DNA from: Rebecca billardiae RCC1528
Lineage: Eukaryota; Protista; Haptophyta
Reading direction: 5' to 3'
Length of the DNA: 64,000 nucleotides
Assembly (NCBI GenBank): GCA_965240325.2
Contig: OZ251230.1
Location: 2,666,001-2,730,000 of the forward strand
Below are positions 8,174 to 64,000 of this stretch, one piece after another. The notes under the pieces were generated by a model. That model ran no database searches. It saw nothing but the letters and a program-made list of their open reading frames with translations, and was not told where the DNA came from. The position numbers were made by a program, and so were the translations under genes. Position 1 is the first letter of the stretch. Every line of letters starts with the position of its first letter.

Positions 8174-8457
8174 CGGCCGGCCGGATGGCGCCGCGCCGCG
8201 GGGCTCGGCGGCAGCCGGTGACGCTCGCGAGCGGCGGCGTGGCGTCACCACCGCCACCACCACAGGGGGATCTGATGCGAGTTGCTGACAACGATGATGA
8301 GAAAGTTCGCCATCGCGGTCGGAAGCGAAAAGTTTTGCTGGCAGGACGACCAAGACAGTTCGAATGAGTGGGACGGCCAAACCGCCGCTGGACCCGAGCG
8401 GCGTCCCGGCGCCTCACCGGGTGAATGCAGTGGGCCGCTGGCGCAGAGGGCGCTGCG

Positions 8458-11223
8458 ATGCTGATGGACGACGACGAGGCGCGCGCCGGGGCCGAGCCGC
8501 CGATCGAGGCGGTGGCCGAGGCGGGCGCGCACGCCGAGCCGTCGGCCGCGCCGCGCAAGGGCCCGAGCAGCCCGCCGCCCGCCGAGATGTCCGCCCTGTT
8601 TGGCGACGGCGGCGGCGGCGGCCGGCCCAACCTCGTGCGAGACATCTGCCTCGTGATCTCGCCGCTCGACGTGAGCCGCGCGTCGGGCGAGGAGCGCGCC
8701 GAGCTGCAGCGCCGGCTGAAGGAGCGCAACCGCGCCTTCCGCAAGCTCCGCCGCCGCGGGCTCGACCTGCGCGTCCGCCGCGGCCGGCCGGGCGGCGCGT
8801 TCGCCGAGCGCTCGTTTGTACTCATCGGCGCGCCCGAGCCGGCGCTCGAGGCGATGGCGTCCAAGATCGGGCTGGAGAAGAAGCTGCTGCCCGAGTACGC
8901 GGACACGCGCGTGCCCATCGCCGGGTACACCGGGTACGAGGAGTACTCCACGCCGCTGCGCCACATCTTCCTGCCCGGGCCTGACACATTCTTCACGTCG
9001 CAGGAGCGGCAGCGCGTGATCTTCCAGCTGATCGAGGCGCCGGGCCGGCTGGCGGTGGACCTGGACGGGCTGGTGGTGGACGGCGTGATCGACGACTACT
9101 TCGCGCTCCCCTCCCTCCGCCGGCAGAAGGAGCTCCTCGCCACGTGGGCCAATGGGCCGCTGCTGGGCGCGCCGCCGCTCGACGACATCCGAGACTACTT
9201 TGGCGAGAAGGTCGCGTTCTACTTCGCCTGGCTCAAGGTGCGCGCGGCGGGAGGGTCGGGGTGGGCTGGGGGGGTAGGGCGCCGGGGCGAGGGCGGGTGC
9301 AGGGCCGCGCCGCCGGCGTGCGCAGCGGACGCGGCGGGCAGGCGGCGCGCTCAGCGCGGGCCGCCGCGCGCCGCCGCGCGCTGTGTCGCCGCGCGCAATG
9401 CCGCACAGACGTACACGCAGTGGCTCGGCGGGCTCTCGCTGCTCAGCCTGGTATTCGCCGGCGTGCAGGCGTACTACGGCCTCGTGCGCTCGACGCTCGA
9501 CACGCCGATCGTGCCCGCGTACGCCGTGTGCCTCGCGCTGTGGTGCGTGCTCTTCACGGAGGCGTGGAAGCGCGAGCAGGCGGTTCTGGCGTTCGTCTGG
9601 AACGTCTCGGACTTCGAGGAGGAGGAGCCGCCGCGCCCCGAGTTCATGCGCGCGGCGGGGATCGTCACGCGCACCGGCGTCTTCAACGCGCGCGGCTTCG
9701 TCGAGATCGAGCCGGAGGAGCTGCGCGCGGACCCGGCGCGGCCGCGCGCGCCGCGCGGCGGCGCCGACGGCGGCGGCGGCGGCGGCGGCGGCGGTTACGA
9801 CGACCGTTACGTCCCCGAGCTGCGCCACCTCGTGTTCCCCGCGGAGGAGTACCGGCGGCGCATCGCGCTGGGCGTGCTCTCGACGGTGCTGATGGCCGTG
9901 GCGGCGGTGGTGGGCACGCTCTTCATCATGACGCTCAAGCTCGTGCTCGGCGAGCGCTGGCACGCGGAGGGGGGGCCCGTGGTCGCGGCGGTGCTCAACT
10001 CGGCCTTCATCACGGTGATGAACTACGCGTGGGCGTGGGTGTCGGTGCGGCTGAACACGTGGGAGACGCACCGCACGGACACGGCGTACGAAGACGCGCT
10101 CATCTGGAAGACCTTCGCCTTCCAGTTCGTCAACTCGTACATCTCACTTTTCTACATCGCGTACGTGCAGGGGACCGGATTCCCTCTCTTTGGGTTCTCT
10201 CGAGAAGACGGGAGCCTGTTCAGAGACTACTGCCCGCGCTCGGGGCGGGAGGGCGGCGGCGGCTCGGACCCGTCGGAGGCGGCGGAGGGCGACTGCATGT
10301 CCTTCCTCTTCATCCAGCTCGCCGTGCAGCTCACCTCCAAGCAGCTCACCCGCTTCATCTTCTCCCTCGCGCCGGGGCTGTGGGCCTGGTACCGGAGTGC
10401 GCGACTCTCCGCACCCGGCGTGGACGCGTCCGCGCGGCGCGACGAGTCGCAGCTGCTGCTGCTCGAGGGGCAGGCGACGCTCGCGCCGTACCCGGGCACC
10501 TTCTACGAGTTCTCCGAGATGGCCATCCAGTTTGGCTACTGCACGATGGTGCGCGCGCGCACCCTCGGCGCGCACGCGCGCGGGGGCGCAGGGGGGGGCC
10601 GCGCGCGCGTGCCGACCCCGCCCCGGCCCCGCCCCCGCGCGCCCGCCCCGCCCCGCCCCCGGCCGCGCCAGTTCGCCGCGGCGTTCCCCTTCGGCGCGGT
10701 GATCTGCTTCCTCACCAACCTCGCCGAGCGCAAGAGCGACGCGACCAAGCTGCTCAAGCTCAGCCGCCGCCCGCGCTACCGCGGCGCGGAGGACATCGGC
10801 ACGTGGGAGCGCGTGTTTGTTTTGCTCAGCCAGGTGGCGGTTCTAACCAACGCGCTGATTATCCTGTTCACCTCGCGGCTGACGCGCACGGCGCTGCAGG
10901 GCGCGTTCGAGACGCGGGCGAACGCCATCGTCTTCATCGTCTTCATCGAGCACCTCGTCTTCGCCGCGCAGGCGCTGCTCGCGCACCTCGTGCCCGACGT
11001 GCCGTTCTGGGTGGACGCCGCAAAGACGCGCAAAGACGTGAAGCGCAAGGAGCGGCTGCGCGTGCTCTCGAGCGAGGAGGCGGAGTGGCGCGCGGCCGCG
11101 GCGGCGGAGGAGGAGGAGGACGACGAGGCGGAGGGGCTCCTCGGCCGCGACGACGGCTCGGACGACGACGACGAGGGCCGGCGGCACGCCATCGGTCCGA
11201 GCGGCTCGCAGTCGGCCGTGTGA
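8458..11223 (+). CDS. Anoctamin/TMEM16 channel or scramblase; predicted exons 8458-9237, 9409-10548, 10672-11223 (alternative ATG at 8425)
   Basis: Motifs PLDDIRDYFGEKVAFYFAWL, WETHRTDTAYEDALIWKTFAFQFVNSY, YEFSEMAIQFGY, FAAAFP, DATKL, AEDIGTW, EHL and PDVPFWV. Two GT-AG introns (9238-9408, 10549-10671) remove non-homologous inserts. Confidence 0.93.
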   Translation: MLMDDDEARAGAEPPIEAVAEAGAHAEPSAAPRKGPSSPPPAEMSALFGDGGGGGRPNLVRDICLVISPLDVSRASGEERAELQRRLKERNRAFRKLRRRGLDLRVRRGRPGGAFAERSFVLIGAPEPALEAMASKIGLEKKLLPEYADTRVPIAGYTGYEEYSTPLRHIFLPGPDTFFTSQERQRVIFQLIEAPGRLAVDLDGLVVDGVIDDYFALPSLRRQKELLATWANGPLLGAPPLDDIRDYFGEKVAFYFAWLKVRAAGGSGWAGGVGRRGEGGCRAAPPACAADAAGRRRAQRGPPRAAARCVAARNAAQTYTQWLGGLSLLSLVFAGVQAYYGLVRSTLDTPIVPAYAVCLALWCVLFTEAWKREQAVLAFVWNVSDFEEEEPPRPEFMRAAGIVTRTGVFNARGFVEIEPEELRADPARPRAPRGGADGGGGGGGGGYDDRYVPELRHLVFPAEEYRRRIALGVLSTVLMAVAAVVGTLFIMTLKLVLGERWHAEGGPVVAAVLNSAFITVMNYAWAWVSVRLNTWETHRTDTAYEDALIWKTFAFQFVNSYISLFYIAYVQGTGFPLFGFSREDGSLFRDYCPRSGREGGGGSDPSEAAEGDCMSFLFIQLAVQLTSKQLTRFIFSLAPGLWAWYRSARLSAPGVDASARRDESQLLLLEGQATLAPYPGTFYEFSEMAIQFGYCTMVRARTLGAHARGGAGGGRARVPTPPRPRPRAPAPPRPRPRQFAAAFPFGAVICFLTNLAERKSDATKLLKLSRRPRYRGAEDIGTWERVFVLLSQVAVLTNALIILFTSRLTRTALQGAFETRANAIVFIVFIEHLVFAAQALLAHLVPDVPFWVDAAKTRKDVKRKERLRVLSSEEAEWRAAAAAEEEEDDEAEGLLGRDDGSDDDDEGRRHAIGPSGSQSAV

Positions 11224-12222
11224 TGAGTCAGACGCGGGGCGCGGCGCGCGCGGGCGTGCTGGCCGGGACGCGAGCGCTGGCAGTCGGCCGCGCAGACGGA
11301 GCGGGTATGTAGCGCAGCAGCCCTGCGGGCTGCGCTGGCTGACGACACGATTGAGGCTGGTGCCAGTGGATTAGCACGTCTGCGCACCCCGGCAGAGTGT
11401 CAGTGGGGCACGCCGCCATCCCGGGGTCAGCGTTGGACCGAAGTCCGAACGAAGACTTTTGGGGCGATGGCCGACGCGACGGGAGTGGTGGGTTTGGCAG
11501 TCCGCGGCGGTTATCGCGTTATGACTGCCGCGTCGCTGCTCCGCCGCCGCCCGTGCCCCTCCCCGCTAGGTGGGCGTATACCTGGCCGGACGCGGGCTCG
11601 GCGCTCGCAGCGGCATCGCCGGAGTGACCGCACGGTGACGAGATGTGAGTCGGAAGCAGCTCGCCTTTGCGGCGCGGGTACCAAGCGGAAAGTGAGCGTA
11701 CCTGCAGGCGGGCCGACCCTCGGCGTGACAGGCGCACCTTCGGGGCCGGTCAGGGCAGCCCACGTCGTGCAGCCGACCGCTTCCGCCGCGACTGCCCCCC
11801 GGCGCACCCTGCCCCGGCCGACGCCTGAGCACAGCGGCCCCGCCCGGGCCCGGGGCCCCCGGGCGGCAGGCCGCGGCGGCGCCGGCACACTCACGGACAG
11901 CCAGCGGCGCTCCTCCGCCTCCTTCGCTCCCCGTTCCTCGTTGTCCCCCCCTGGCGTGGTGCGCGTGCATCACGCTCGAACTCTCACGATGCTGCTTCGG
12001 CGTCCTTCTGCGGCGGCATCCGACGGTCGTGCGCACTGCGAGGCGGAGCGCGAGGTGCTGGGCACTGCCGTCCGTCGTGCTCCCTCCTCCCCATGGCCCA
12101 CTGCTTTACTCGAGGGGAACGCTCAGCGCCTTCTGCTTCTCTCATCCGCTCGTGCGCGACCACGCTTGTGCTGGGTGTCCTTCTGAGGCGTCCGGTGGCC
12201 GGGCGCACATCGGGGGCGCACA

Positions 12223-13036
12223 TCGGGGTGGTAAGTGAGGTGCCGGTGCGCTGCCGTCCGTCGTGCGCGCTCCTCGCTCATCTCCACCTGCTTCGCTCGA
12301 GCGTGGGCGCGCTCGGCGCTGTCTGCCTCGCTCGCGCGCGAGCGCATTTTGGCGCTGGACGAGACTCGTGCGCATCCATGCTGCTTCTGCGTCCATCGGC
12401 AGCGTCCGGCGGCTGGGCGCACGGCGGGGCGGCGCCAGCGGGCGTGTGTCGGGCACGCTCCACGCTCCTCACCAGCTGCTGCGCGCTCGCGGGGGCGCGC
12501 TCAACAACACGCTCCTCACCAGCTGCTGCGCGCTTGCGGGGGCGCGCTCAACAACACCTTCTGCCCTTCGTCCGAGCTGGAGCGCATGTCGGCGGCGCGG
12601 GCAGTGAGCGCACACATGCTGCTTCGGAACGTCGGGGTGGTAAGCGAGGTGCCGGTGCGCTGCCGTCCGTCGGGCGCGCTCCTCGCTCATCTCCACCTGC
12701 TTCGCTCGAGCGTGGGCGCGCTCGGCGCTGTCTACCTCGCTCGCGCGCGAGCGCATTTTGGCGCTGGACGAGACTCGTGCGCATCCATGCTGCTTCTGCG
12801 TCCATCGGCAGCGTCCGGCGGCTGGGCGCACGGCGGGGCGGCGCCAGCGGGCGTGTGTCGGGCACGCTCCACGCTCCTCACCAGCTGCTGCGCGCTCGAG
12901 GGGGTGCGCTCAACAACACGCTCCTCACCAGCTGCTGCGCGCTCGCGGGGGCGCGCTCAACAACACCTTCTGCCCTTCGTCCGAGCTGGAGCGCATGTCG
13001 GCGGCGCGGGCAGTGAGCGCACACATGCTACTTCGG
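12223..13036. repeat. Tandem duplication, period 409 bp (12223-12627, 12632-13036), with degenerate flanking partial copies
   Basis: Near-identical copies starting tcggggtggtaagYgaggtgccggtgcgctg and ending cacatgctRcttcgg. Confidence 0.9.
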
Positions 13037-13357
13037 CGTCCCGTTCTCGGCCATCTGTTGGGCGGCCGGCGGGGCGGCGCGTGAGGTGTCGTTGCGCTGT
13101 CGTCCGTCGGGCACACTCGTCGCTCATCACCTTCTACTTCGCTTGAGCGGAACCGCGCGCTTCATCACCTTCGATCTGCCCCCCGCTCGAGCGAGCGCGC
13201 TTCTTCGGCGCGGGCCCCTCGGGGCGCAACAGCGGAGCCGCGCGCGCTCCGCGTGTTCGCGCTCGCCGCACGCCGCTGCCGCGCTGCAAGCACGCCGCCG
13301 CCACTCGCCGCCGCACGACTCACCCTTCTCTACAGCTCGCCGTCGCTCACTCGCGCG

Positions 13358-13451
13358 TCTATCTGTCTATCTATCTGTCTATCTATCTGTCTATCTGTCT
13401 ATCTGTCTATCTGTCTATCTGTCTATCTGTCTATCTGTCTATCTGTCTATC
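13358..13451. repeat. (TCTA/TCTG)n microsatellite
   Basis: tctatctgtctatctatctg... read directly. Confidence 0.95.
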
Positions 13452-13505
13452 CCTCGCGCGCGCGCCGATCATCATGCGCCGATCATCGTGTGCGCACCCT
13501 ATCTT

Positions 13506-14005
13506 CTCCGCGCGTCACTTGCGCCTATCTCATCTCCGCGCGTTACTTGCGCCTACTATCTACTTCTCCGCGCGTTACTTGCGCCTGTCTCCGCGCGTCA
13601 CTTGCGCCTATCTACTTCTCCGCGCGTTACTTGCGCCTACTATATCTACTTCCCCACGCGTTTCTTGCGCCTGTCTCCGCGCGTCACTTGTGCCTATACC
13701 TCCTCCGCGCGTTACTTGCGCCTATACTATCTACTTCTCCGCGCGTTACTTGCGCCTGTCTCCGCGCGTTACTTGCGCCTACTATATCTTCTCCGCGCGT
13801 TTACTTGCGCCTATCTTCTCCGCGCGTTACTTGCGCCTATGTCTCCGCGCGTTACTTGCGCCTACTATATCTTCTCCGCGCGTTACTTGCGCCTATCTTC
13901 TCCGCGCGTTACTTGCGCCTATCTCCTCCGCGCGTTACTTGCGCCTATGTCCTCCGCGCCTATCGTCTCCGCGCGCATCTTCTCCGCGCGTCACTCGCAC
14001 CTGTC
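13506..14005. repeat. Minisatellite, about 17 copies of CTCCGCGCGTYACTTGCGCCTR with short variable linkers
   Basis: 22-nt core repeated with linkers such as tctt, tctactt, ctatatctt, tgt. Confidence 0.92.
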
Positions 14006-14034
14006 TTCTCATGCGCGCGCGCCGATCATCATCA

Positions 14035-14365
14035 TGTGCGCGCGCCGATCATCACTTCGTGCTCAGCGTAACCATCGCATCATCATCCGGGTGCCGAGCG
14101 TGCCATCATCGCACACACCTTTCGGCGCGCTTACATGGGCGTACGTGGTGTCTGTGGCCGGGGCGTGGGGGACGACGTCGTCGGCGGGCTGGCGTTGATA
14201 CCCGCGCGCGCCGATCATCATTCGTGCTCCGCGCAACCATCATCATCATTCGGGTGCCGAGTGCGCCATCCTCGCGCGCACCTTTCGGCGCGCTTACATG
14301 GGTGTACGTGGTGTCTGTGGCCGGGGTGTCGGGGACGACGTTGTCGGCGGGCCGGCGTTGATACC
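14035..14365. repeat. Two tandem copies of a roughly 170-bp unit, with a degenerate third copy near 14975-15135
   Basis: gcgccgatcatca...cacctttcggcgcgcttacatgggYgtacgtggtgtctgtggccgggg...ggcgttgatacc occurs twice. Confidence 0.8.
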
Positions 14366-16031
14366 TGCGCCGCGTGGCGGCTCTGGCGGATGCAGCTCTC
14401 GCCGGTCGGCTGCCACTGCAGCGGGGCGCGCGCGCTGCTGGGCGTTTTCGGGCGCGAAAAGCGACGTGGCCCGCTGGCCACCTGCGGCGCTTTCACCTGG
14501 CCTTGGTCTTCCTCGCTCGTCACCTTCTGCGTCGCTCGAGCGCGGACGCGCTCATCATCGTCAATCACCTCCTGTCTATCGCTCGAACCGCTGCTTTCCG
14601 TTCCGTTCCGTTTCTACGCGCGTTCCTTTCCTCACGCCGAGCGTGCCTGGCCCTTCCCGCCACGCGCCACGCGTTCCTCTCCCATTCCTGTGCCATCTTC
14701 CTCACTCATCACCTCCTGCTTCGCTCGAGCGCTCGAACGTGGTCGCGTTCATCGTCAATCGCCTTGTGCCTCTCGCGCGAGCCGTTGCGGCGAATTCGTC
14801 ACGCGCGCGCATGGTCATGCGCGCGCGCCGATCATCGCGTGACGATCATCATGCGCGCGCACCGACCAGCGCCGATCATCATGCGCGCGCGCCGTCATGC
14901 GCGCGCGCCGAGTATCATGCGCCGTTTATCATGCGCGCGCTCCGATCCGCCCGCGCGTGCACCGCTCATCGTGCGCGCGCACCGATCGTCATTCGTGCGC
15001 CGCACGGCCATCACCATTCGCGCACCGTGCGCGTCACCTCGCACGCCCCTTTTCGGCGCGCTTTCACGGGCGCTCGTGCGGTCTGCAGGCGCGTGGTTGA
15101 CGACGTTGTCGGCAAGCCGACGTCGATACCTGCGCCTCATGTCGGCTCGGGTGTGTTCCGCGACGGCTCGGGCGCATGCGCTCTCGCCGGCCGGCGGCGG
15201 CGGCGGCAGTGCGCGCGTGCTGCTGGGCGGTTTCGTCGGGCAAGTGGACGGCGTGGCCTGCGGGTCACCTGCAGCGCTTCACCTGGCCTGTGCCGGCGCG
15301 CGACGACGGGCGGGTTACGCCAGTGGTCCTGTGGTCCGCCGGTCGCTGCGGGCTCTCGGCGACCTCTGGCAGGGGCTGAGCGCAGTGAGCGCTGGGGGGG
15401 AGGGGGGGGGGCACCCAGTCCGCCGCTCCGCGGCCTCACACCGGCGGCGTGCGGCGTGGTGGTGGGCAGGGCGCTGCGCCTCTGGGGGTCGGGGCCGGGC
15501 CTGGCCTCGGCCGCGCCGGCCGACGCCGGCCACGCCGGCGTGGCGCCTGGCGCTGCGCCTCTTTGGGCGGGCGCTGCCTCGCCGCCCTGCCCCCCCCCGT
15601 GGCGACTGGCGGCCCCAGGCAACCCCTGCATCCGCCTATCGTAAACACCGGATCGCCAGAAGGAGCGCGACGCGCGCGCGGTTATGGGGCGATGGCCGAC
15701 GCGACGGGAGTGGTGGGTTTGGCAGTCCGCGGCGGTTATCGCGTTATGACTGCCGCGTCGCTGCTCCGCCGCCGCCCGTGCCCCTCCCCGCTAGGTGGGC
15801 GTATACCTGGCCGGACGCGGGCTCGGCGCTCGCAGCGGCATCGCCGGAGTGACCGCACGGTGACGAGATGTGAGTCGGAAGCAGCTCGCCTTTGCGGCGC
15901 GGGTACCAAGCGGAAAGTGAGCGTACCTGCAGGCGGGCCGACCCTCGGCGTGACAGGCGCACCTTCGGGGCCGGTCAGGGCAGCCCACGTCGTGCAGCCG
16001 ACCGCTTCCGCCGCGACTGCCCCCCGGCGCA

Positions 16032-16525
16032 CCCTGCCCCGGCCGACGCCTGAGCACAGCGGCCCCGCCCGGGCCCGGGGCCCCCGGGCGGCAGGCCGCG
16101 GCGGCGCCGGCACACTCACGGACAGCCAGCGGCGCTCCTCCGCCTCCCGCCCGCCCTCCCTGGCGTGGGATCGCCGCGCTGGGGTGGGTGCGGCTTGAGT
16201 CAGCGTCCACGGGGGGGGCGATGTGCTGCCGGGCGGGCGCTGCCTCGCCGCCCTGCCCCCCCCGTGGCGACTGGCGGCCCTGCCCCGGCCGACGCCTGAG
16301 CACAGCGGCCCCGCCCGGGCCCGGGGCCCCCGGGCGGCAGGCCGCGGCGGCGCCGGCACACTCACGGACAGCCAGCGGCGCTCCTCCGCCTCCCGCCCGC
16401 CCTCCCTGGCGTGGGATCGCCGCGCTGGGGTGGGTGCGGCTTGAGTCAGCGTCCACGGGGGGGGCGATGTGCTGCCGGGCGGGCGCTGCCTCGCCGCCCT
16501 GCCCCCCCCCGTGGCGACTGGCGGC
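16032..16525. repeat. 246-bp tandem duplication within the right end of the split-repeat element
   Basis: 16032-16277 is repeated from 16278, with CCC microhomology at the junction. Confidence 0.9.
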
Positions 16526-16650
16526 CCCAGGCAACCCCTGCATCCGCCTATCGTAAACACCGGATCGCCAGAAGGAGCGCGACGCGCGCATGCAAAGTAG
16601 TACTACTCGTCGCCGGCCGGCATCGTGCGGCGCGCACGCGCTCGCGCGCG

Positions 16651-17657
16651 ATGACGTTCAAGATGGGGCTGAAGCGCGGCGGCTCCAAGGGCGGGCGGGC
16701 GCCGTCGTCGGCGGTCTCTGCGCTCTTCGCCGCCGCCGAGCCCGACGAGGCGCCCCCCGCGGCCGCGCCCGCCGCCGCCGTCGTGCCGCCGCCTCCGCCG
16801 CCGCCGCCAGCCGCCGCCGCCGCCGCCGCCGCCGCGCCCGCGCCCGCGCCCAAGCGGCCGCGCGGCGAGTACCGCTTCGGCCACCGGTACGTGCGCGCGA
16901 AGCTCGTGCCCATCCCGCCCTCCGACGCGCGGCCGCTCCCCTCCGTCGACAGCCTCGAGCGCATCGGCGACCTCGGGCGCGGCGCGACCGCGCGCGTCTT
17001 CCGCGCGCGCGAGCGCGGCACCGGCCGCGTCTTCGCGCTCAAGGCGTTCCGCGCGCTGTCGGCGTCGGCGGCGGGCGCGGCGGGGGAGGAGGGCGCGGGG
17101 CTCGGCGGGCTCCCGCTCGAGGTGCTGCGCGAGCTCCTCCTGCTGCGCAGCCTCCGCCACCCCAACGTTGTGCGCGCGCACGGCGTGTTTGTCGGAGAAG
17201 CGCGTGGCGGCGGCGGCGGCGAGGGCGGCGGGGGCGTCTTCCTCGCGATGGAGTCGGTGGAGTACGACCTCGGGCTGCTGATCGAGCACATGCCGCACCC
17301 GTTCAGCGAGGGCCAGGCCAAGTGCCTCTGCATGCAGCTGCTCTGCGCGCTCAGCGGTGCGGCGCGCGCCGCCCGCCGCGCGCGCGCGAGAGCGTGCGCT
17401 GGCTGCGCTGCACAGGGTATAGGGTTAGGGTTAGGGTTAGGGCGCTGGCTGGCTGCTGCGCCGCGCCGCGCGCCGCGCCCACGGCACGCGCCGCCCGACG
17501 CCGCTGCCACCACCCCCCCCTCCCCTGCGCGCGCGGGCAGCCCTGCACGCGCACGGGATCGTGCACCGCGACCTGAAGCAGACCAACCTGCTGCTCAGCA
17601 AGGCCGGTGTCCTCAAGCTCGCCGATTTCGGACTTGCGCGCCGCATGCCGGCCGGTA

Positions 17658-17694
<37 letters not shown>

Positions 17695-18577
17695 GCCGAG
17701 CGGCGCGGCGGCGGCGCGCGCGCAGCTCACGCCGGACGTGGTGTCGCACTGGTACAGGGCGCCCGAGCTGCTCCTCGGCTCGCGCGCGTACGCGCCGGAG
17801 GGGTGCGTGGGGTGCGTAGACGTGTGGAGCGCCGGCGTGCTGCTGGCCGAGTGGCTGAAGTCCGGGCAGCCGCTGTTCCCCGGACATTCGGAGCTGGAGC
17901 AGCTGGGCCTGATCTTCGCGACGCTGGGCGCGCCCACGCGCGCGTCGTGGCCCGCGCTCTTCGAGGCGGCGGAGGCGGCGGACGGCGGGGACGCCGCGGC
18001 GGCGCGGCTGCCGCGCGCGCGCGCCGTGCCGCTGCCAGTAGGCCCAACGATGGAAGCGCTAGACCCGATGAGCGGCGCGAGCGTGCGCGTGCCGCGCTCG
18101 GCGCTGCGCCGGGCGTTCCCGATCCGCGGGTACGACCCGGCTCTCCCGGGCACGGCGGCGCTGCGCACGACGGCGCTGAGCAACGCGGGCTTCGCGCTGC
18201 TCGCGGGCTGCCTCGAGGTCAACCCGGCGCGCCGGCCGAGCGCGCGCGCCGCGCTCGACTGCCGATGGTTCGACGAGGCGCCGGCGCAGGAGCCGCTCGG
18301 CCGGTTCGAGCTGCGCTCGCTGCAGCGCGCGCGCGCGGGCGCGCTCGCGTCGGGCGCGCACGAGCGCGCGCTCGCGCACTCGCACGCGCAGCGCGTGGCG
18401 GTCGCGGCCGCGCAGCAGTACGCGGTGGCGGCGTCGGCCGCGGGCGCCGCGGCGGCCGCGGCGGCGGCGGCGGCGGCGGCGGCGCAGCATCAGCAGCAGC
18501 AGCAGCAGCAGCAGCTGGCCGCGCTGCCTGCGGCGCCCGCCCCGCCGCCAGGCTCGGCCTCGGGCTGGCCGCGCTGA
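16651..18577 (+). CDS. Cyclin-dependent kinase, CDK10/CDK11-like; predicted exons 16651-17356, 17541-18577
   Basis: VFALK, PLEVLRE at the PSTAIRE position, [28 protein letters not shown] (resembles CDK10/11), [51 protein letters not shown]. Intron 17357-17540 joins the two ORFs in frame. Confidence 0.9.
17414..17442. repeat. Interstitial telomere-type repeat (TTAGGG, 3-4 units) in the CDK intron
   Basis: agggtatagggttagggttagggttaggg; G-rich strand is the sense strand here. Confidence 0.93.
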
Positions 18578-19152
18578 CGACCCCGGTGGGGGGGCGGCCC
18601 CGCCGTGACGGGGCCCTTGAGCCCGGCGTCGGACCCTGTTACTGTCAAGCAACTGTCACGTCTTGCCGTTACATGAGACATGACTCATATGCGTGCCAAC
18701 TGACAACTGTTGATCCCGGGTGCGCGCACCTGATCAGCTGCGGCACTGCCAGCGGAAATCTCGGCTGCGATCTCGGCACTTCGCCAGCGCGTTTCGTCAA
18801 TCAACAACACCTGAAATTGGGGCGGCGCGGACGTCTTTGGCCGAGGTTGGCGCCCGCCCGGCGTCTCGCCGTCTCGAAGCGGGACAAGTCGCGCCGTCCG
18901 CCCACTTGCGCAGCGCAGCCTCCCAGGCGCCGCCCCTCCGCCGCACGTCCGCCGAGCAAGCCCGCAGCGCCAGCGCGCGGCCTCCGCCGACGTCCCCGCA
19001 CCCCCGCCGAGCAGCCAGCAGCCCCAGCGCGCGGCTCCATCGGCCCAGCACGCAGCCGCATCCGCCTGCGCCCCCCGCACCCTCCCCCCCCCCCCACCCG
19101 CCCGCCCGCCCACCCACCGACCGCCGCCGCCGCCGCCGCCGCCGCCGTCCCG

Positions 19153-21618
19153 ATGGCGCCGACCGTGCTCAAGCTCGTGTGCGGCAAGGAGATCCGGCGC
19201 ACGACGCTGGCGGAGGGCTCGCTCACGTGGCCCACCGTGGTCAAGCGCGCGAGCGAGCTGCTCGGCGTCGACGCGACCAAGATGAGCGTTACCTACAAGG
19301 ACGACGAGGGCGATCTCGTCACAATCTCGAGCACCGAGGAGCTGGTCGAGGCGGCGGCGCTCGCGGCGCAGGCGAGCCCGCCGCTGCTGCGGCTCACGCT
19401 GGCGCACCGCGCGCCGGGCGGCGGCGCGCAGCCCGGCGACTCGGCCGCCGTCGAGCTGCCGGACGCTAACTCGGTCCTCGCCGCGATCGCGGCCGAGCTG
19501 CCCGTTCTGCGCCCGATCGTGCGGCGGCTGCAGCACGGCCTCGCGGCGGCGCGCGGCGAGGGCTCGGCGCCGCCGGGCGGGCGCGGCGCGGCCCCGCCGT
19601 TCGGCCCGCCGGGGCACCCGCACGGCCCGCCCGGCGCGTGGATGCGCGGCTTCCACCAGCACCACCCGAACGCGCACGGCCACGGCCACGGCCATTACCC
19701 GCATTACCCGCATTGCCCGCCGCCGCACCCGCAGCCGCCGCCCCACCAGCTGGGGCACCCGCCGCCGCACCCGCCGCCGCACCCGCCGAGCGCCGACGGC
19801 GGCGGCTCCGCGGGCGCCGACGCCCCCCCGAGCGCGGCCGAGGGCGGCGCGGGCCTTGGCGTGCACCCGCTCCACACGTGCGACGGCTGCGACGCGTCGC
19901 CCATCCGCGGACTGCGGTACCACTCGAACGTGGCGGCCAACTACGACCTGTGCGCGGCGTGCTACGGCGCGGCGCTGGGCTGCGCGGCGGACGAGCCCGC
20001 GCGCGCCGCGCTCGCCGCGCAGTACTCGCCCGTGCGCCCGCCGCCCGCGGGGCCGGCCGCGCCGTGGCGGCGCGGCTGCCGCGGCGGCGGCGGCGGCGGC
20101 GGCGAGCGCTGCGCCGCCGGCTCGAGCAAGTTCGGCGCGCGGTTCATCCGCGACGTGACCGTGTTCGACGGGACGGAGGTCTCGCCCGGCGCGGCGCTCA
20201 CCAAGATCTGGCGCCTGCGCAACGAGGGCGAGCAGCCCTGGCGGCCGGGCACCAAGCTGGTCTTCTGCGGCGGCGACGCGCTGGGCGCGGAAGACTCTGC
20301 CGAGCTGCCCAACCGCGGTGTGGTGCAGCCCGGGGAGGAGGTGGACGTGGCGGTGGACCTGGTGGCGCCCGTCACGCTCGGGCGGTACGTGTCGTACTGG
20401 CGGCTCGCCGGGCCGATGGGCCGGCGCTTCGGCCAGCGCGTCTGGGTCAACGTCACCGTCGTCGACCCCGCCACGCCGCCCGGCGCGGACGTGCCGGCGG
20501 CGGAGGGCGCGCCCGCCGCGCCGGTCGACGCGGATCACGGCGGCGCGGACGACGACGACGAGCGCGCGCCGCCCGCCGCGGAGGACGACGGCGCCGCCGG
20601 GCTCCCCGCCCTCCTCGCCACCATCGCGCGCCACGCCGCCGCCGCCGTCGACGAGTCGGCGCGCGAGGCGGCGGCGGCCGCGCGGCAGCCGCCGCAGCCG
20701 CAGCCGCAGCCGCAGCCGCAGCCGCAGCCGCAGCCGCAGCCGCAGCCGCAGCCGACGGCGGCGGCGGCGGCGGCGCGCGGCGGCTCGTCGTCCTCGTCCG
20801 ACGAGCCCGTCACGCCCGCCGTCACGCCCACCCCCGAGCGCGCCACCGCCACACCCGCCGCGCCGCCGCGCCTCTCCTTCCCCGTCGAGGTCGCCGACGG
20901 CCGCCGGCTGAGCCTCAGCTGGGCGCAGGGTGCGGAGCCGGCGCCGGTGGCGCGCGCGTTCGCGGCCGCGCACGGGCTGGGCAAGGCGGACGAGAAGGAC
21001 GTGGTCGCGTTCATCGGGCACGCGGAGGACCTGCTCCGCGCGCAGGCCGCGGCGAGCGCCAAGCAGCAGCCGCAGCCGGCGGCCGCCGACGCGCCGCCGC
21101 CCGCCGCCGGAGCCAAGAGCGCCGCCGCCGAGCCCGCCGCCGCCGCCGCCGCCGCCTCCGCGCCGCCGCCGCCGCCACTCGCGGCGACGACGCCGGCCGC
21201 CGACGCGGCGGCGTCGCGCGCGGCGGGCAAGGCGCCCGCGTCCGCGCCCGCCGCCTCGCCCTCCTCCTCCCCGCCGCCCGAGCAGCTCGCCGCCCTCGGC
21301 GCGCTGCGCGCCATGGGCTTCGGCACCGCCGCCGCTGACGCGCCGCTCCTGTCGGCTGTCGTCGCAAACAACGGCGGCGACATTGCGAAGTGCGTCGCGG
21401 ATTTGGCGCAGCTGGCGGAGTGGGACACGCTGGTGGCGGACCTCGCGTCGATGGGCTTCGAGGACCCCACCGCCGCCAAGGCCGCGCTCCTCTCCTCCAA
21501 GGGCGACGTCAAGCGCGCCGTGCGCACGCTCGTCGGCACGGCGCAGCCGCCGCCGTCCGCGCAGGCCGGCGCCGCCGCCGACGGCGGCGCGGCCGCGGCG
21601 GCGCAGCCGCAGCAGTAG
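19153..21618 (+). CDS. NBR1: NBR1-like selective autophagy receptor (PB1-ZZ-FW-UBA-LIR-UBA)
   Basis: PB1 (LKLVCGKEIRR...YKDDEGDLVTISSTEEL), ZZ finger (CDGCDASPIRGLRY...YDLCAAC), FW domain (ARFIRDVTVFDGT...KIWRLRNEG...GRYVSYWRL..GQRVW), and two UBA-like repeats (LRAMGF, LASMGF) flanking WDTL. Confidence 0.92.
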   Translation: MAPTVLKLVCGKEIRRTTLAEGSLTWPTVVKRASELLGVDATKMSVTYKDDEGDLVTISSTEELVEAAALAAQASPPLLRLTLAHRAPGGGAQPGDSAAVELPDANSVLAAIAAELPVLRPIVRRLQHGLAAARGEGSAPPGGRGAAPPFGPPGHPHGPPGAWMRGFHQHHPNAHGHGHGHYPHYPHCPPPHPQPPPHQLGHPPPHPPPHPPSADGGGSAGADAPPSAAEGGAGLGVHPLHTCDGCDASPIRGLRYHSNVAANYDLCAACYGAALGCAADEPARAALAAQYSPVRPPPAGPAAPWRRGCRGGGGGGGERCAAGSSKFGARFIRDVTVFDGTEVSPGAALTKIWRLRNEGEQPWRPGTKLVFCGGDALGAEDSAELPNRGVVQPGEEVDVAVDLVAPVTLGRYVSYWRLAGPMGRRFGQRVWVNVTVVDPATPPGADVPAAEGAPAAPVDADHGGADDDDERAPPAAEDDGAAGLPALLATIARHAAAAVDESAREAAAAARQPPQPQPQPQPQPQPQPQPQPQPTAAAAAARGGSSSSSDEPVTPAVTPTPERATATPAAPPRLSFPVEVADGRRLSLSWAQGAEPAPVARAFAAAHGLGKADEKDVVAFIGHAEDLLRAQAAASAKQQPQPAAADAPPPAAGAKSAAAEPAAAAAAASAPPPPPLAATTPAADAAASRAAGKAPASAPAASPSSSPPPEQLAALGALRAMGFGTAAADAPLLSAVVANNGGDIAKCVADLAQLAEWDTLVADLASMGFEDPTAAKAALLSSKGDVKRAVRTLVGTAQPPPSAQAGAAADGGAAAAAQPQQ

Positions 21619-54100: not shown

Positions 54101-57100
54101 TCCGCGCGCGCGCTGCGGTCGCCCCCCGCGATCGTCGCGCGCAGCGGCAGCTGCGCCACGTCCACGCGCACGCGCGCGCTACCCGCCGCCGCCGGGTCAG
54201 CCTCCATCTGCGCCGTCACCTCCAGCTCGTAGCTGTGCAGCGGCGCGAGGGCGTACGGGGAGAGTACGAGCGCGGCGCCTGCCGCCTCGGGCGCGCCGTC
54301 GAGCGCGGAGCGCGCGACGCTCGCGTGCGCGGGCGCGCCGCTCGCGCTGTGCGTCACGCCGAGCAGCGACCAGCGGAAGCGCACGCGCGCGTCCGCGTCC
54401 TCCCAGCAGCTCGCGACGCGCGCGCCGCCCGACAGCAGCGTCGCCGCGCCCGGCCGCACGGCGCGCACGGCCGGCCCCGCGACCGAGACGGTCGGCTTCG
54501 CGTCCGCGCGCGGCGGACGGTGCACGGTGTGCAGCGCAACCGCCGAGACCGAGCCGAGCATGCGCGAGCGCACGCGCAGCGCGAACGCCAGCCGGTGCGC
54601 GCCCGGCGCGAGCGTGCCGAGCGCGTGCAGCGCCACCGCCGCGCCCGTGTGCGCCGCCAGCAGGCCGTTGAGCGCCGCCGCCTCGGCCGCGGAGATGCCG
54701 AGGCTGCGGCTGCGGTCGAGCGCCCACTCAAAGGACAGCCCCGCCGCGCCGCCGCCCGACGAGGCGGAGCCGTCGAGCGCGAGGTCGGCGTCCGGGCAGC
54801 GCGAGAGCGCGCCGGGGCCGCTGAGCGCCGCGACAGGCGGCGCGCAGCCCAACGGCTCGGCGCACGGCGCGTCCGCGTCGATGGCGGCGGCGCCGGCGGC
54901 GCCGAGCGCGGACGGGTCGCACGGCGGCGCGCACACGGAGGGCGCCGGCCGCACCGCGCCCTCGCGCAGCACCAGCGCCGAGCCCGGGCGCAGCGCGGTG
55001 CCCGCGCCCAGCTGCACGACGAGCGCCGACGCGTCACGCCAGTAGCACGTGGGCGGCCGCGCGCCGTCGGCAGCGGACCCGCCGACCAGCGCGAGCGTCG
55101 CGTCGTCGAGGGCGGGCGCGCACGGGCCGACGCCCGCGCCCATGCGCGCGCGGTCGGTCGGCTGCGCGTCGAACTGGAGGAGCACGGAGGTGGCGCTGCC
55201 GTCGAGCGCCGCGCTGAGCAGCGTGGGCGCGTGCGCGCCGATGAAGGTGAACGACACACCGCCGTCCTCCTCCCCCCCCTCCGACGGCGCGGGCTCGAAC
55301 TGCTGCCCGTTGAGCGAGACGCGCACCGGCACGGGCGCGCCGCCCGCCACGCCGTGGCTCGCCGTCGCGACGACGAGCGTGTCCGTCGCCACGGCGGGCG
55401 AGGGCGCGAGCGCGGCCCCAAACGCCACGCGCAGCAGCTGCAGCGGACCTTCAGGGCCCAGCCCCGCGCCGCCCAGTGCGCCAAACCCGACACCCGTGAT
55501 GGCGGTCGCGTCGCCCGCGCCGCCCTGCGTCGGCACGATCGAGCTCACGCGCGGAGGCGCGTAGTAGTGGAAGCGCACGCCGTCGGCGGTGGTCGTGTGC
55601 GCGGTGCCGTTGCCCAGCGAGAGCTCGAGCGAGACCGACGTCGCGCCGCCGAGCGCGGGCGCGGGCTCGGACGCCGGCAGCGGCGGCAGTGTGCAGCGCG
55701 CGCGCGCGCTGCCGTCCGCGCCCGCGGGCAGCATGCCCGCGCGCGCCGCGCAGCCGCCGGCCTCGGCCGCGCCGCCGCCGCCACCGCGCAGCACGCAGCA
55801 CAGCTGGCCCTCGCCGAACTCGGCAAAGCCAACGCCCACGAGCGTCACCACCGTGCCGCCGCCCACCGGCCCCGCGGGCGGGTGCAGCGCGGCCACGCGC
55901 ACCGCGCCCATCTCGTACAGCGAGATTGCGATCTCGTCGCCAAACAGCGAAGGCGCGGAATACGCGCCGCCGTCCAGGCGCAGGCGGACAACATACCGGC
56001 CGGCGGGCAGCGCGGAGCCGTCGGCCGCGGCGTGGGGCACCGCGCACGCCGCGGCGCGCGCGCTCAGCACGACGGCGGCCGTGCTCGCCTCCGCGACGCC
56101 CGCGCCGCCGTCCGCGCGCGAGAACGCGCACGACGCGGCGCCGACGCCGCCCGCGCCGACGCCGCCGCCGTCGGTCGGCCCGACGAAGCCCTCGCCGGCG
56201 AGAGTGAGCGTGCACTCCGCGCCGAGCGGCGCGCCGAGCGGCTCGGCGCTCTGCACCACCGCGCGGAGCACCGGCGGCGGCGGCGGCGCGGGCGGCGGCG
56301 CAGGCGGCGGCGCGGGCGGCGGCGGCGGCGGCGGGCGCGGCGGCGGGCTCGGCGGCGGGCTCGGCGGCGGGCTCGGCGGGCTCGGCGGCGGGAATGGCTC
56401 TGCGCGCGGCGGCGGCGGCGGGGCTGGCGGGGGCGAGGGCGGCGGCGGCGACGGCGGCGGCGCCGGTGGCGGCGGGCTCGGCGGCGGGCTCGGCGGCGGC
56501 GAGGGCGGCGGGCTCGGCGGCGGGCTCGGCGGCGGGCTCGGCGGCGGGCTCGGCGGCGGGCTCGGCGGCGGGCTCGGCGGCGGCGGGCTCGGCGGCGGCG
56601 AGGGCGGCGGCGTGGGCGGCGGCGAGGGCGGCGGGCTCGGCGGCGGCGCGGGCGGCGGGCTCGGCGGCGGGCGCGGCGGCGGGCTCGGCGGCGGGCTCGG
56701 CGGCGGGGTTGGCGGCGGGGTGGGCGGCGGCGACGGCGGTGGCGACGGCGGCGGCGAGGGCGGCGGGCCCGGCGGCGGCGAGGGCGGCGGGTTGGGCGGC
56801 GGGCTGGGCGGCGGCGAGGGCGGTGGCGAGGGCGGCGGGGGGCTCGGCGGCGGGCTCGGCGGCGGCGAAGGCGGCGGCGACGGCGGCGGCGGGCTCGGCG
56901 GCGGGCTCGGCGGCGGCGATGGCGGCGGCGAGGGCGGCGTGCCGGGCGGCGGCGGGCTGGGCGGCGGGCTGGGCGGCGGGCTGGGCGGCGGGACTGGCGG
57001 CGGGCTCGGCGGCGGACTCGGGGGCGGCGAGGGCGGCGGGCTCGGCGGCGGCGAGGGCGGCGGGCGCGGCGGCGGCGAGGGCGGCGGGCGCGGCGGCGGC

Positions 57101-60100
57101 GAGGGCGGCGGGCGCGGCGGTGGCGAGGGCGGCGGGCTCGGCGGCGGCGAGGGCGGCGGGCGCGGCGGCGGCGAGGGCGGCGGGCTCGGCGGCGGCGACG
57201 GAGGCGGGCTCGGCGGCGGCGACGGCGGCGGGCGCGGCGGCGGCGACGGCGGCGGCGAGGGCGGCGGCGAGGGCGGCGGCGGGCTGGGCGGCGGGCTGGG
57301 CGGCGGGCTCGGCGGCGGGCTGGGCGGCGGGCGGGGCGGTGGGGATGGCGGCGGCGACGGCGGCGGCGACGGCGGCGGCGACGGCGGTGGGCTCGGCGGT
57401 GGGCTCGGCGGTGGGCTCGGTGGCGGGCTCGGCGGCGGCGGGCTCGGCGGCGGGCTCGGCGGCGGGCTCGGCGGCGGGCTCGGCGGCGGCGACGGCGGCG
57501 GAAACGGCGGCCGCGACGGTGGCGGCGAGGGTGGCGGGCGTGGGGGCGGGCTTGGCGGCGGCGAGGGGGGTGGCGAGGGCGGCGGGCTCGGCGGCGGCGA
57601 GGGCGGCGGCGTTGGCGGCGCGCGTGGCGGTGGCGACGGCGGCGGCGAGGGCGGCGGGCCCGGCGGCGGCGGGCTCGGCGGCGGGCTCGGCGGCGGGCTC
57701 GGCGGCGGGCTCGGCGGCGGGCTCGGAGGCGGCGGGCTCGGCGGCGGGCTCGGCGGTGGCGCCGGCGGCGGGCTCGGCGGCGGCGAGGGCGGCGGGCTTG
57801 GCGGCGGGCTCGGCGGCGGGCTTGGAGGTGGCGGGCTGGGAGGCGGGCTCGGCGGCGGGCGCGGCGGCGGCGAGGGCGGCGGGCCGGGCGGCGGGCTGGG
57901 CGGCGGGCTGGGCGGCGGGGAAGGCGGCGGGGAAGGCGGCGGCGACGGCGGCGGGGAAGGCGGCGGCGAGGGCGGTGGCGAGGGCGGCGGGACGGGCGGT
58001 GGGGACGGCGGCGGGGATGGCGGCGGGAGCGGTGGAGGCGAGGGCGGCGGCGAGGGCGGCGGCGAGGGCGGCGGCGACGGCGGCGGCGACGGCGGTGGGC
58101 TCGGCGGTGGCGATGGCGGCGGGCTCGGTGGCGGCGAGGGCGGCGGCGACGGCGGCGGCGAAGGCGGCGGGAACGGCGGCTGGAACGGCGGCGGCGACGG
58201 CGGCGGCGACGGCGGCGGGCTCGGTGGGGGCGAAGGCGGTGGGGAGGGCGGCGGCGACGGCGGCGGGCTGGGCGGCGGCGGGCTGGGCGGCGGGCTCGGA
58301 GGCGGGCTCGGCGGTGGGCTGGGTGGTGGGCGCGGTGGCGGCGAGGGCGGCGGCGAGGGCGGCGGCGAGGGCGGTGGCGAGGGCGGCGGCGGGCTGGGTG
58401 GCGGGCTGGGCGGCGGCGAGGGCGGCGGGCTGGGCGGCGGGCTTGGTGGCGGGCTTGGCGGCGGGCGTGGCGGCGGCGACGGAGGCGGTGACGGCGGTGG
58501 GGGGCTTGGTGGGGGGCTCGGCGGTGGACTCGGAGGCGGGGACGGCGGCGGAGCGGGCGGCGGCGAGGGCGGCGGCGACGGCGGCGGGAAAGGCGGCGGC
58601 GAGGGCGGTGGGCTCGGCGGTGGTGATGGCGGTGGCGAGGGCGGCGGGCTCGGTGGTGGCGGGCTCGGCGGCGGGCTCGGCGGCGGCGATGGCGGCGGGC
58701 TTGGAGGCGGCGAGGGCGGCGGGCTCGGCGGCGGCGACGGCGGCGGCGATGGCGGCGGGCTGGGCGGCGGCGGGCTCGGTGGCGGGCTCGGCGGCGGCGA
58801 GGGCGGCGGGCTCGGCGGCGGGCTCGGCGGCGGCGAGGGCGGCGGCGAGGGCGGCGGCGAGGGCGGCGGCGAGGGCGGCGGCGAGGGCGGCGGCGATGGC
58901 GGCGGCGATGGCGGCGGGCTCGGCGGCGGCGGGCTCGGCGGCGGGCTGGGCGGCGGCGAGGGCGGCGGGCTCGGCGGCGGGCTCGGCGGCGGCGAGGGCG
59001 GGGGGCTCGGCGGCGGGCTCGGTGGCGGCGAGGGCGGCGGCGAGGGCGGCGGGCTCGGCGGTGGCGATGGCGGTGGCGATGGCGGCGGGCTCGGCGGCGG
59101 CGACGGCGGCGGAAAGGGCGGCGGGCTCGGCGGCGGTGATGGCGGCGGCGATGGCGGCGGGCCTGGCGGCGGCGGGCTTGGCGGCGGGCTCGGCGGCGGC
59201 GACGGCGGCGGGCTCGGCGGCGGCCTCGGTGGCGGGGAGGGCGGAGGGCGTGGCGGCGGGCTCGGTGGCGGCGAGGGGGGCGGCGAGGGTGGCGGCGACG
59301 GCGGTGGTGTTGGAGGCATGCTCGGCGGCGGTGACGGTGGCGGCGATGGCGGCGGGCTGGGAGGCGGTGGGCTCGGTGGCGGGCTCGGCGGCGGCGATGG
59401 CGGCGGGATGGGTGGTGGGCTCGGCGGTGGGCTCGGCGGCGGGCTGGGCGGCGGTGATGGCGGTGGCGACGGCGGCGGGCTCGGCGGCGGTGATGGCGGC
59501 GGCGATGGCGGCGGGCTCGGCGGCGGCGGGCTCGGCGGCGGGCTCGGCGGCGGCGACGGCGGCGGGCTTGGCGGCGGTGACGGCGGCGGCGAGGGCGGAG
59601 GGCTCGGCGGCGGACTAGGCGGCGGCGATGGCGGCGGACTCGGTGGCGGACTGGGCGGCGGCGAGGGCGGCGGGCTCGGTGGCGGTGCTGGCGGCGGCGA
59701 TGGCGGCGGGCTTGGCGGCGGCGGGCTCGGTGGCGGACTGGGCGGCGGCGACGGCGGCGGGCTGGGCGGTGGGCTGGGCGGCGGCGAGGGTGGAGGGCTC
59801 GGCGGCGGGCTGGGCGGCGGCGATGGCGGCGGGCTCGGTGGCGGCGACGGTGGTGGCGACGGCGGCGGGCTCGGCGGCGGTGATGGCGGCGGCGAGGGCG
59901 GCGGGCTCGGCGGCGGCGGGCTCGGTGGCGGACTCGGCGGCGGCGACGGCGGCGGGCTGGGCGGTGGGCTGGGCGGCGGCGAGGGCGGGGGGCTCGGCGG
60001 CGGGCTGGGTGGCGGCGAGGGTGGCGGGGTCGGCGGCGGCGACGGCGGTGGTGATGGCGGAGGGCTCGGCGGCGGTGATGGCGGCGGTGATGGCGGCGGG

Positions 60101-63100: not shown

Positions 63101-64000
63101 GGTGGCGGCGATGGCGGCGGGCTCGGCGGCGGCGACGGCGGCGGCGACGGCGGCGGGCTCGGCGGCGGTGATGGCGGCGGCGACGGCGGCGGGCTGGGCG
63201 GCGGCGGGCTCGGTGGCGGGCTCGGCGGCGGCGACGGCGGCGGGCTGGGCGGCGGTGACGGCGGCGGCGGGCTGGGCGGCGGACTGGGCGGCGGCGATGG
63301 CGGAGGGCTCGGCGGCGGCGACGGCGGTGGCGACGGCGGCGGGCTCGGCGGCGGTGATGGCGGCGGTGATGGCGGCGGGCTGGGCGGCGGCGGGCTCGGC
63401 GGCGGGCTCGGCGGCGGCGATGGCGGCGGGCTGGGCGGCGGGCTGGGCGGCGGCGAGGGCGGCGGGCTTGGCGGCGGGCTTGGTGGCGGCGAGGGTGGCG
63501 GGCTCGGCGGCGGGCTCGGCGGCGGCGAGGGCGGAGGGCTCGGCGGCGGCGACGGCGGCGGCGAGGGCGGCGGGCTTGGCGGCGGCGGGCTTGGCGGCGG
63601 GCTCGGCGGCGGCGAGGGCGGCGGGCTGGGCGGCGGGCTGGGCGGCGGCGTGGGCGGAGGGCTAGGCGGCGGCGATGGCGGCGGCGAGGGCGGTGGACTG
63701 GGCGGTGGCGACGGCGGCGGGCTTGGCGGCGGGCTCGGCGGCGGCGACGGCGGCGGCGATGGCGGCGGGCGTGGCGGCGGTGGGCTTGGCGGCGGGCTTG
63801 GCGGCGGCGAGGGCGGCGGGCTTGGCGGCGGGCTGGGCGGTGGCGAGGGCGGAGGGCTAGGCGGCGGCGAGGGCGGCGGCGAGGGCGGCGGACTCGGTGG
63901 CGGCGACGGCGGTGGCGACGGCGGCGGGCTCGGCGGCGGCGACGGCGGAGGGCTGGGCGGCGGGCTTGGGGGCGGCGGGCTTGGGGGCGGGCTTGGCGGC
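48217..64000 (-). CDS. Giant polycystin-1/REJ-like membrane protein with extensin-like Ser-Pro3 stalk (5'-partial, over 5,200 aa in window)
   Basis: SPPP repeats, IPT/TIG-like units (LHPPAGPVGGGTVVTLVG, VRVSLNGQQF), PKD/REJ-like units (LDGSASS, IDGSSTLDP, PPHGGALRVSP..G..LVT.Y), EGF-like unit, GPS (CHWWDE...WSAEGC...CACTHLTDF), TM segments and an EF-hand pair. The repeat phase is unbroken from 59319 to the window end, so the ORF-track start at 59319 is an internal Met. Confidence 0.85.
56275..64000 (-). repeat. Coding (SPPP/QPPP/RPPP)n array over 7.7 kb with higher-order duplications
   Basis: 12/15-bp units; a block at about 60850-61510 recurs at +657 bp. Confidence 0.95.

Follow-up and report, generated by a model that had tools for sequence, protein, structure and literature searches.

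The 64,000-nucleotide (nt) window analysed here, from the haptophyte Rebecca billardiae RCC1528 (GenBank assembly GCA_965240325.2, contig OZ251230.1, positions 2,666,001 to 2,730,000 of the forward strand), carries from position 11461 onwards a gene-less element of 5.1 kilobases (kb) with split direct repeats. We call the family of this element W, and a larger relative of 6.7 kb that bears a reverse transcriptase (RT) P. With a probability of roughly three in four, W is a non-autonomous split-direct-repeat retroelement of the kind represented by TOC1. This assignment is carried by a repeat layout that is constant across copies, by insertion without duplication of target bases and by ends that W has in common with P. 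An earlier reading made from the letters of the window (the sequence-only reading) had proposed such an element, together with an autonomous partner encoding RT, ribonuclease H (RNase H) and a tyrosine recombinase. Of this partner the RT was found, in the larger P of the same layout, and neither a recombinase nor, with one Pfam model, an RNase H match was obtained in P.

Architecture and copies of family W

Repeats were mapped by BLAST of window positions 10-18 kb on itself and tandem arrays by Tandem Repeats Finder (TRF); all coordinates are those of the window, plus strand. Self-BLAST aligned A1 (11457-11922) with A2 (15682-16147) over 466 nt with one mismatch, and B1 (15565-15677) with B2 (16477-16589) over 113 nt at 100% identity. 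When the ends were refined from other copies, the true A proved to be 462 nt long (11461-11922 and 15686-16147, 100% identical, starting GGGGCGATGG), the single mismatch of the raw alignment having sat in flank or junction bases. The full B measures 121 nt and ends …GCGCGC-GCGGTTAT. Right ends mostly extend beyond the 113-nt B into GCGGTTAT, and therefore the 7-nt spacer that had been presumed between B1 and A2 corresponds to the last 8 nt of B, so that B1 (15565-15685) directly abuts A2. The order and places of the repeats, as well as their identity, are thus as the sequence-only reading had them, while the limits of A and B had to be moved. Between A2 and B2 lies the unique segment C, earlier put at about 80 bp and here refined to 83 nt (16148-16230), which occurs in all copies. 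Comparison of copies shows that B2 of the window element (16477-16589) is 3'-shortened and lacks GCGGTT; either it is without the final bases of the 121-nt B or it retains the final AT alone at 16590-16591, which may be the true end.

The interior (11923-15564) holds a 409-bp unit in two copies, an 8-bp unit in 12, a 26/83-bp unit in 18, a 163-bp unit in two, and arrays of 16-30 bp, next to unique sequence. A tally of non-overlapping TRF spans assigns ~58% of it to tandem arrays; the remainder is unique and still non-coding, and the description of the interior as tandem arrays only was overstated. W itself is non-coding, as had been proposed. A Pfam scan of the 10 open reading frames (ORFs) of the window element gave no match, and the G+C content at the three codon positions (GC1/2/3) of W ORFs is flat, at 0.57-0.81; in the flanking anoctamin and NBR1-like genes GC3 is 0.95-0.97 and GC2 0.49-0.60.

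The genome assembly searched comprises 72 Mb in 41 contigs and is very GC-rich; our reading of W copies rests on 60 fetched loci. Searches with A and with B gave at least 40 genome places each, at ~100% identity and on many contigs, so a single-locus repeat is excluded. The exact 21-nt start of A occurs 108 times, compared to 0 in a reversed control, and for that reason the repeat pattern lies far beyond chance. Alignment of the fetched loci yielded at least 23 copies in the order A…B-A-C-B, distributed over 14 contigs and 99.2-100% identical to the window copy. W is a dispersed and very young family, in agreement with the sequence-only reading, and its layout is not an assembly artefact. The 409-bp unit is double in one subfamily, to which the window copy belongs, and single in the other. 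One solo A-C-B copy on contig 21 is the analogue of a solo long terminal repeat (LTR). The 246-bp tandem duplication noticed earlier in the window copy (16032-16277 and 16278-16523, spanning the end of A, C and the start of B) is real. Because the spacing from B1 to B2 is 666 nt in the other copies and 912 nt in this one, the duplication is private to the window copy, and it is missing from every other copy read; its junction sits in a CCCTGCCCC microhomology. A metagenome scan with the start of A returned no match.

In all 14 elements in which both repeats were read A1 equals A2, despite the existence of five haplotypes (A positions 74, 193, 249 and 401) that separate the elements from one another. 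A change in one A must therefore reach both in daughter copies. Such identity fits a regeneration of the ends off one template in reverse transcription, from which it would be expected.

Within A, a hairpin GGCAGTC…GACTGCC at 11496-11529 (and 15721-15754) is kept in all related families; in its loop the octamer of the 3' terminus, GCGGTTAT, recurs and is followed by CGCGTTAT. As a conserved signal the A/junction hairpin was rejected: its fold was not clearly better than that of shuffles (z -1.9), and no covariation or compensatory changes were found. Two further loci touch on family W. One is a cluster of three W-type elements in 19 kb (G000 C31:582774-601491), of which two have opposite orientations and flanks 86-95% alike. 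At the other, L087:1559-3019, a 38-nt piece of the A start is immediately followed by an ORF of 487 amino acids (aa); its codon-position composition is strongly that of coding sequence (GC3 0.86, GC2 0.46), and Pfam gave no match to it.

Ends and insertion sites

All internal junctions read …GCGCGC GCGG TTAT|GGGGCGATGG…, and the left end is GGGG in 28 out of 28 distinct left ends read. For the copy at C1:2272553 an empty site could be compared, since its left flank continues in an unoccupied paralogous repeat at locus L063. The empty site reads …CAATCTACTCTC|ATGTGGGTCTACC… and the filled one …CAATCTACTCTC|GGGG…GCGGTTAT|ATGTGGGTCTACC…, with zero bases duplicated or lost; nearer to the junction the pair reads …CTACTCTC|ATGTGGG… and …CTACTCTC|GGGG…GGTTAT|ATGTGGG…. 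The inserted product is thereby shown to begin and end precisely with the two bases that meet at the internal B1|A2 junction (…GGTTAT|GGGG…), and to lie beside WTTY|A (motifs in IUPAC codes). The absence of a target-site duplication, which the sequence-only reading had noted for the window copy (left TTTT|GGGG…, right …GCGCGC|ATGCAAAG), is upheld by this empty/filled pair and by 13 of the 14 elements with both flanks read. The four bases TTTT to the left of the window copy (11457-11460) fit the family motif WTTY|, and the empty site assigns them to the target.

The motif (G)WTTY stands directly before the element in the 27 distinct left flanks, where T is found at -2 in 27/27 (binomial P 1e-20) and at -3 in 22/27 (P 2e-12), and C or T at -1 in 25/27. 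After complete right ends the next base is A in nine out of nine cases (eight W, one P). The target motif resembles the donor GGTTAT on the same side of the junction, and the left-flank motif is the same in P and W, neither of which targets (TA)n. Two W copies (L052 and L032; G000 C16:~636300 and C32:~883800) have the same 24 nt after their 3' end (AGCTGGCATCCGCCACTGCAGAGC) and then diverge; possibly they sit at an identical site of another repeat, or a short piece of flank was carried along.

The coding relative P

The sequence-only reading had expected copies that combine these ends with an RT, and family P provides them. Pairs of A starts ~6.04 kb apart enclose weak RVT_1 matches in seven P copies, and an eighth match belongs to a copy in which A2 alone was located; P copies lie, for example, at G000 C1:3345300-3351600 and C13:2781900-2788100. 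The match (E 8e-8, 37 bits, model positions 34-205) lies in an open frame of 575 aa. Sequence of P was read at the two ends of one copy (L068, L069), and its ORF1 and ORF2 were placed by coordinates, with x counted from the first base (GGGG) of A1. The ends of P show the A…B-A-C-B layout of W. Compared to W, the first 97 nt of A are 93% and the last 50 nt of A 88% identical; the 120 nt upstream of B1 (15445-15564 in the window, from BLAST of L068 against the element), together with B1 and the junction, are 88% identical, and C plus B2 81%. A 3' array of 20-30-bp GCGCGCCGATCATCAT units is common to both families. The first ~70 nt of A (11461-11530 in the window, hairpin included) and the last ~25 nt of B are near-invariant across W, P and more divergent relatives, the rest of A diverging, and these two regions are likely cis signals. 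In copy number W exceeds its relative, with at least 23 copies against eight RT-bearing P copies.

ORF1 of P is a single open frame of 775 aa, or ~705 aa when counted from the first ATG, at the end of A. It is coat-like, with an RGG- and Pro-rich first part, a structured part after it and a Cys/His-rich tail. Some 480 nt separate the ORF1 stop from the RT core, and the tandem arrays begin no more than ~1,040 nt beyond that core, by x = 4545. In a sister family the ORF1 tail is 44-48% identical to that of P and lies ~750 nt before its own RT, which is located near C3:2441340. Pfam scans of pieces of P ORF1 and of ORFs of the divergent relatives gave no match. A word search with ORF1 gave none either, probably because it was swamped by low-complexity sequence, and an exhaustive HMMER search with the conserved ORF1 tail returned three matches that we take as spurious, all to proteins of bacterial type whose domains (NHL and fibronectin repeats, secretion-sorting tails) are unrelated. 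Among the searches run, P ORF1 thus appears to be without recognisable relatives. In the genome as a whole RVT_1 matches fall into at least seven distinct groups, with open frames of 440 to 3,371 aa, several of them with near-identical copies.

Interpretation and alternative explanations

Split direct repeats A1-B1-A2-B2 define PAT, Toc and kangaroo in DIRS, and also Ngaro and VIPER (PMC4157794). In the DIRS order the place of an integrase or endonuclease is taken by a tyrosine recombinase, and according to the DIRS model an internal copy of the joined ends restores the termini, with a short junction motif common to element and target (PMC7192593). TOC1 is counted among the non-autonomous DIRS elements (PMC9940879). 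Like W, TOC1 of Chlamydomonas reinhardtii (Day et al. 1988, cited in PMC9940879) is ~5 kb long, contains no genes, has the layout A…B-A-unique-B with internal arrays, and varies in copy number. It is regarded as dependent on coding relatives (TOC3), as W would be on its coding relative; there is no sequence relation between TOC1 and W, and TOC3 is described as a DIRS element with a recombinase, whereas in P, the nearest coding relative of W, none was found. The original TOC1 study reportedly gave repeats of 217/237 bp, a unique piece of 123 bp and an array of 76 bp. W thus shows what characterises a TOC1-like element (no coding capacity, internal arrays, ends common to a coding relative), and here the sequence-only reading proved right.

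PAT, Toc3 and kangaroo, as well as Ngaro and VIPER, share with W and P the A1-B1A2-B2 order, gag followed by RT and the lack of target duplication (PMC4157794, PMC7192593), and the resemblance of the W junction motif GTTAT to the target GWTTY is in line with the idea of a trinucleotide common to junction and target (PMC7192593). They differ in that their defining recombinase was not found in P and that the 3' ends of W are ragged. In such elements RNase H follows the RT, and a methyltransferase domain is carried by DIRS and PAT, though not by Ngaro. In trypanosomes (SIRE/VIPER) and among LARD and TRIM elements, non-autonomous derivatives outnumber their coding relatives. SIRE, LARD and TRIM resemble W in being gene-less, in keeping the ends only and in being commoner than the coding element, but have other end structures and another integration chemistry. 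DIRS-1 of Dictyostelium is comparable in that an internal copy of joined ends can restore the termini, and a linear single-stranded complementary DNA (cDNA) intermediate has been reported for it (PMC7192593); in contrast to W it has inverted terminal repeats, an internal complementary region and its own recombinase. In architecture, integration footprint and dependence on a coding relative W matches the split-direct-repeat kind. As for the DIRS order, the split-repeat layout and the absence of duplication are present, and the recombinase that defines the order was not found in P.

As a TOC1-like element, W would have kept the cis parts alone, namely the ~70 nt at the start of A, the ~25 nt at the end of B, the ~120 nt upstream of B1 and the 3' tandem array. 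Following its transcription, W would be copied by the RT of a related coding element, the best candidate being P. Thanks to the A…BA…B redundancy a single template would suffice for rebuilding both ends, the role that R/U3/U5 play in LTR elements. The weakest step concerns the integrating enzyme, which we infer to be a tyrosine recombinase; as no gene for it is apparent in W or P, it would have to act in trans.

A number of observations weigh against this interpretation. The RT of P is recognised by a weak match to the RVT_1 profile (37 bits). Between the RT core and the tandem arrays the frame stays open for at most ~350 aa, which would accommodate a thumb plus RNase H, or a small extra domain, but not RNase H plus a recombinase. 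PF00589, searched at E<=1 in the whole genome, gave six matches, of which five (E ~4e-4) fall in one family and one has E 0.25, and none lies in P or W; a search with the recombinase protein recovered the same five copies alone and none in P. PF17919, the single Pfam model for RNase H, had no match in P, although this model may miss DIRS-type RNase H; weak PF17919 matches occur in another RT family with 969-aa frames, as at C23:375967, and nowhere else. Judged from the profile searches and the available space, the recombinase that defines the DIRS order thus seems to be missing from the coding member of the family. In addition, right ends are ragged, consisting of GCGG plus T, TT, TTA, TTAT or TTATGG. 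Four copies, the window copy among them, are 6-10 nt short in the GC repeat at the right end, and in two copies a 2-nt terminal redundancy makes the 3' end overlap the 5' GG. The short right ends are not offset by longer left ends, the 5' end being fixed, and this rules out a crossover point that slides along the junction. The 3' variation is not what simply shifting the cut in a closed circle would produce. Together with the uncompensated short ends and the 2-nt redundancy, it is better explained by a substrate that is linear and ragged at its 3' end than by a circle cut at varying places. Finally, one 3'-shortened copy among the 14 flank pairs has a 14-bp duplication. This duplication, GATACCTGAGATTA, flanks the W copy L085/L086 (G000 C7:1037950-1045267), in which B2 is 3'-shortened and the left flank, ATTA, is atypical; this copy may have entered by another route.

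The tyrosine recombinases that were found belong to five copies of a separate small element (among them loci L061, L062 and L063: G000 C33:127348-130611, C38:19597-22860 and C12:521632-524895), which carries a stand-alone gene of ~450 aa followed by a 36-bp array. Its protein shows the motifs ALRKAE…HSFRIG…RWRS…IYAR, and one of the five copies carries a stop codon. In Pfam, its relatives from public databases (375-830 aa, 32-41% identical) match only Phage_integrase or a CXXC zinc finger and show no RT domain. The recombinase gene was read with 1.5 kb to either side; over that distance nothing like the ends or the junction motif of W or P occurs, and the flanks differ. An insertion of the C1 copy inside the recombinase element was considered and ruled out, as the site is another repeat that adjoins it.

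It is possible, although on balance doubtful, that W and P with the sister family form a recently active split-direct-repeat clade without a recombinase of its own, which integrates precisely and without duplication at WTTY|A. For this it would depend on a tyrosine recombinase of the stand-alone, Crypton-like type, borrowed from a small element unrelated to it, or on a route not described for such elements; in that case W would be a parasite of a parasite. If the absence of a recombinase from P holds, this integration route and the sharing of recombinases across unrelated elements become testable. As a TOC1-like element W would be ordinary; its value lies in being a clean, very young data set for a poorly understood mode of transposition, with exact ends, one empty site, a strong target motif, joint renewal of the repeat copies and a coding relative that apparently lacks a recombinase.

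The alternative that survives best, which we nevertheless hold to be unlikely, keeps the same replication and lets integration proceed without a tyrosine recombinase: host break repair, or an unrecognised activity of ORF1 or ORF2 of P, would join to the chromosome a linear cDNA whose 5' end is fixed and whose 3' end is ragged. The absence of a recombinase, and of room for one, in P speaks for it, as do the 3' ends that overlap the 5' GG by 2 nt or fall short by 6-10 nt and the single copy with a 14-bp duplication. The cDNA of DIRS-1, moreover, is reported to be mostly linear and single-stranded (PMC7192593). On the other hand, the strength of the motif at the target (WTTY|A, P down to 1e-20) speaks for an enzyme with sequence specificity, the clean junction without loss of target bases argues against random break capture, and the visible parts of ORF1 with the Cys/His-rich tail match no enzyme family.

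W could also be a DNA-level element, Crypton-like or another circle-forming transposon, that is moved by the stand-alone recombinase and resembles an RT element incidentally. The lack of poly(A) and of a duplication, and precise ends that equal a circle junction, would agree with this, and intact stand-alone recombinase genes, with relatives of the Phage_integrase or CXXC type only, do exist. It is nonetheless improbable: W shares its cis ends, its whole layout and its target motif with an element that carries gag plus RT, each variant is present in A1 and A2 alike, an outcome that would not arise if a mutated donor were copied faithfully as DNA, and the recombinase element, in the 1.5 kb on either side of its gene, has neither ends nor a junction motif in common with W and has different flanks.

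Still less credible is a rearranged non-autonomous LTR retrotransposon (TRIM- or LARD-like) or a Penelope-like element with pseudo-LTRs, despite the direct repeats at both ends of W and a partner with a gag-like ORF, a Cys/His motif and an RT whose weak RVT_1 score is also typical of Penelope RTs. Penelope-like elements are marked by pseudo-LTRs that stem from tandem copies with a variable 5' cut, by a hammerhead ribozyme and by a GIY-YIG nuclease. Full identical LTRs bounded by TG…CA with a 4-6-bp duplication were not found, nor were the ordinary LTRs with duplications that the sequence-only reading had named, next to a single locus, as an outcome contrary to it. Instead, the left end is half of the right-end repeat in every copy, A-interior-B and A-C-B are not copies of one unit, W has no 4-6-bp duplication and its termini are GG…AT. 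No tRNA-complementary primer site follows A, a tRNA-type site being ruled out because the shared CCCTGGCGTGG into which both A1 and A2 run is not complementary to a tRNA 3' end, and P has no space for an integrase. The 5' end of W is constant, in contrast to the variable truncation in Penelope tandems, and an Rfam scan of the ends of W and P gave sub-threshold microRNA-like hairpins only and no hammerhead or other ribozyme. An assembly artefact or local segmental duplication has a negligible probability, as the private 246-bp duplication alone could be of that type and the recurrence of the layout at more than 23 loci, which are spread over many contigs and have unique flanks, refutes an artefact for the whole element. 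The DNA-transposon, LTR, Penelope-like and misassembly explanations are each contradicted by these data.

The window copy starts ~240 nt after the ORF of an anoctamin-family gene (8425-11223) and precedes a protein-kinase exon (16960-17353), which is followed by an NBR1-like gene with PB1, ZZ, NBR1 Ig-like and UBA domains (17803-21618). G+C content is extreme throughout the window, at 63-90%, and reaches 86-90% in 56001-64000, where GC skew is +0.3 to +0.4 and many GCC/GGC-type repeats occur.

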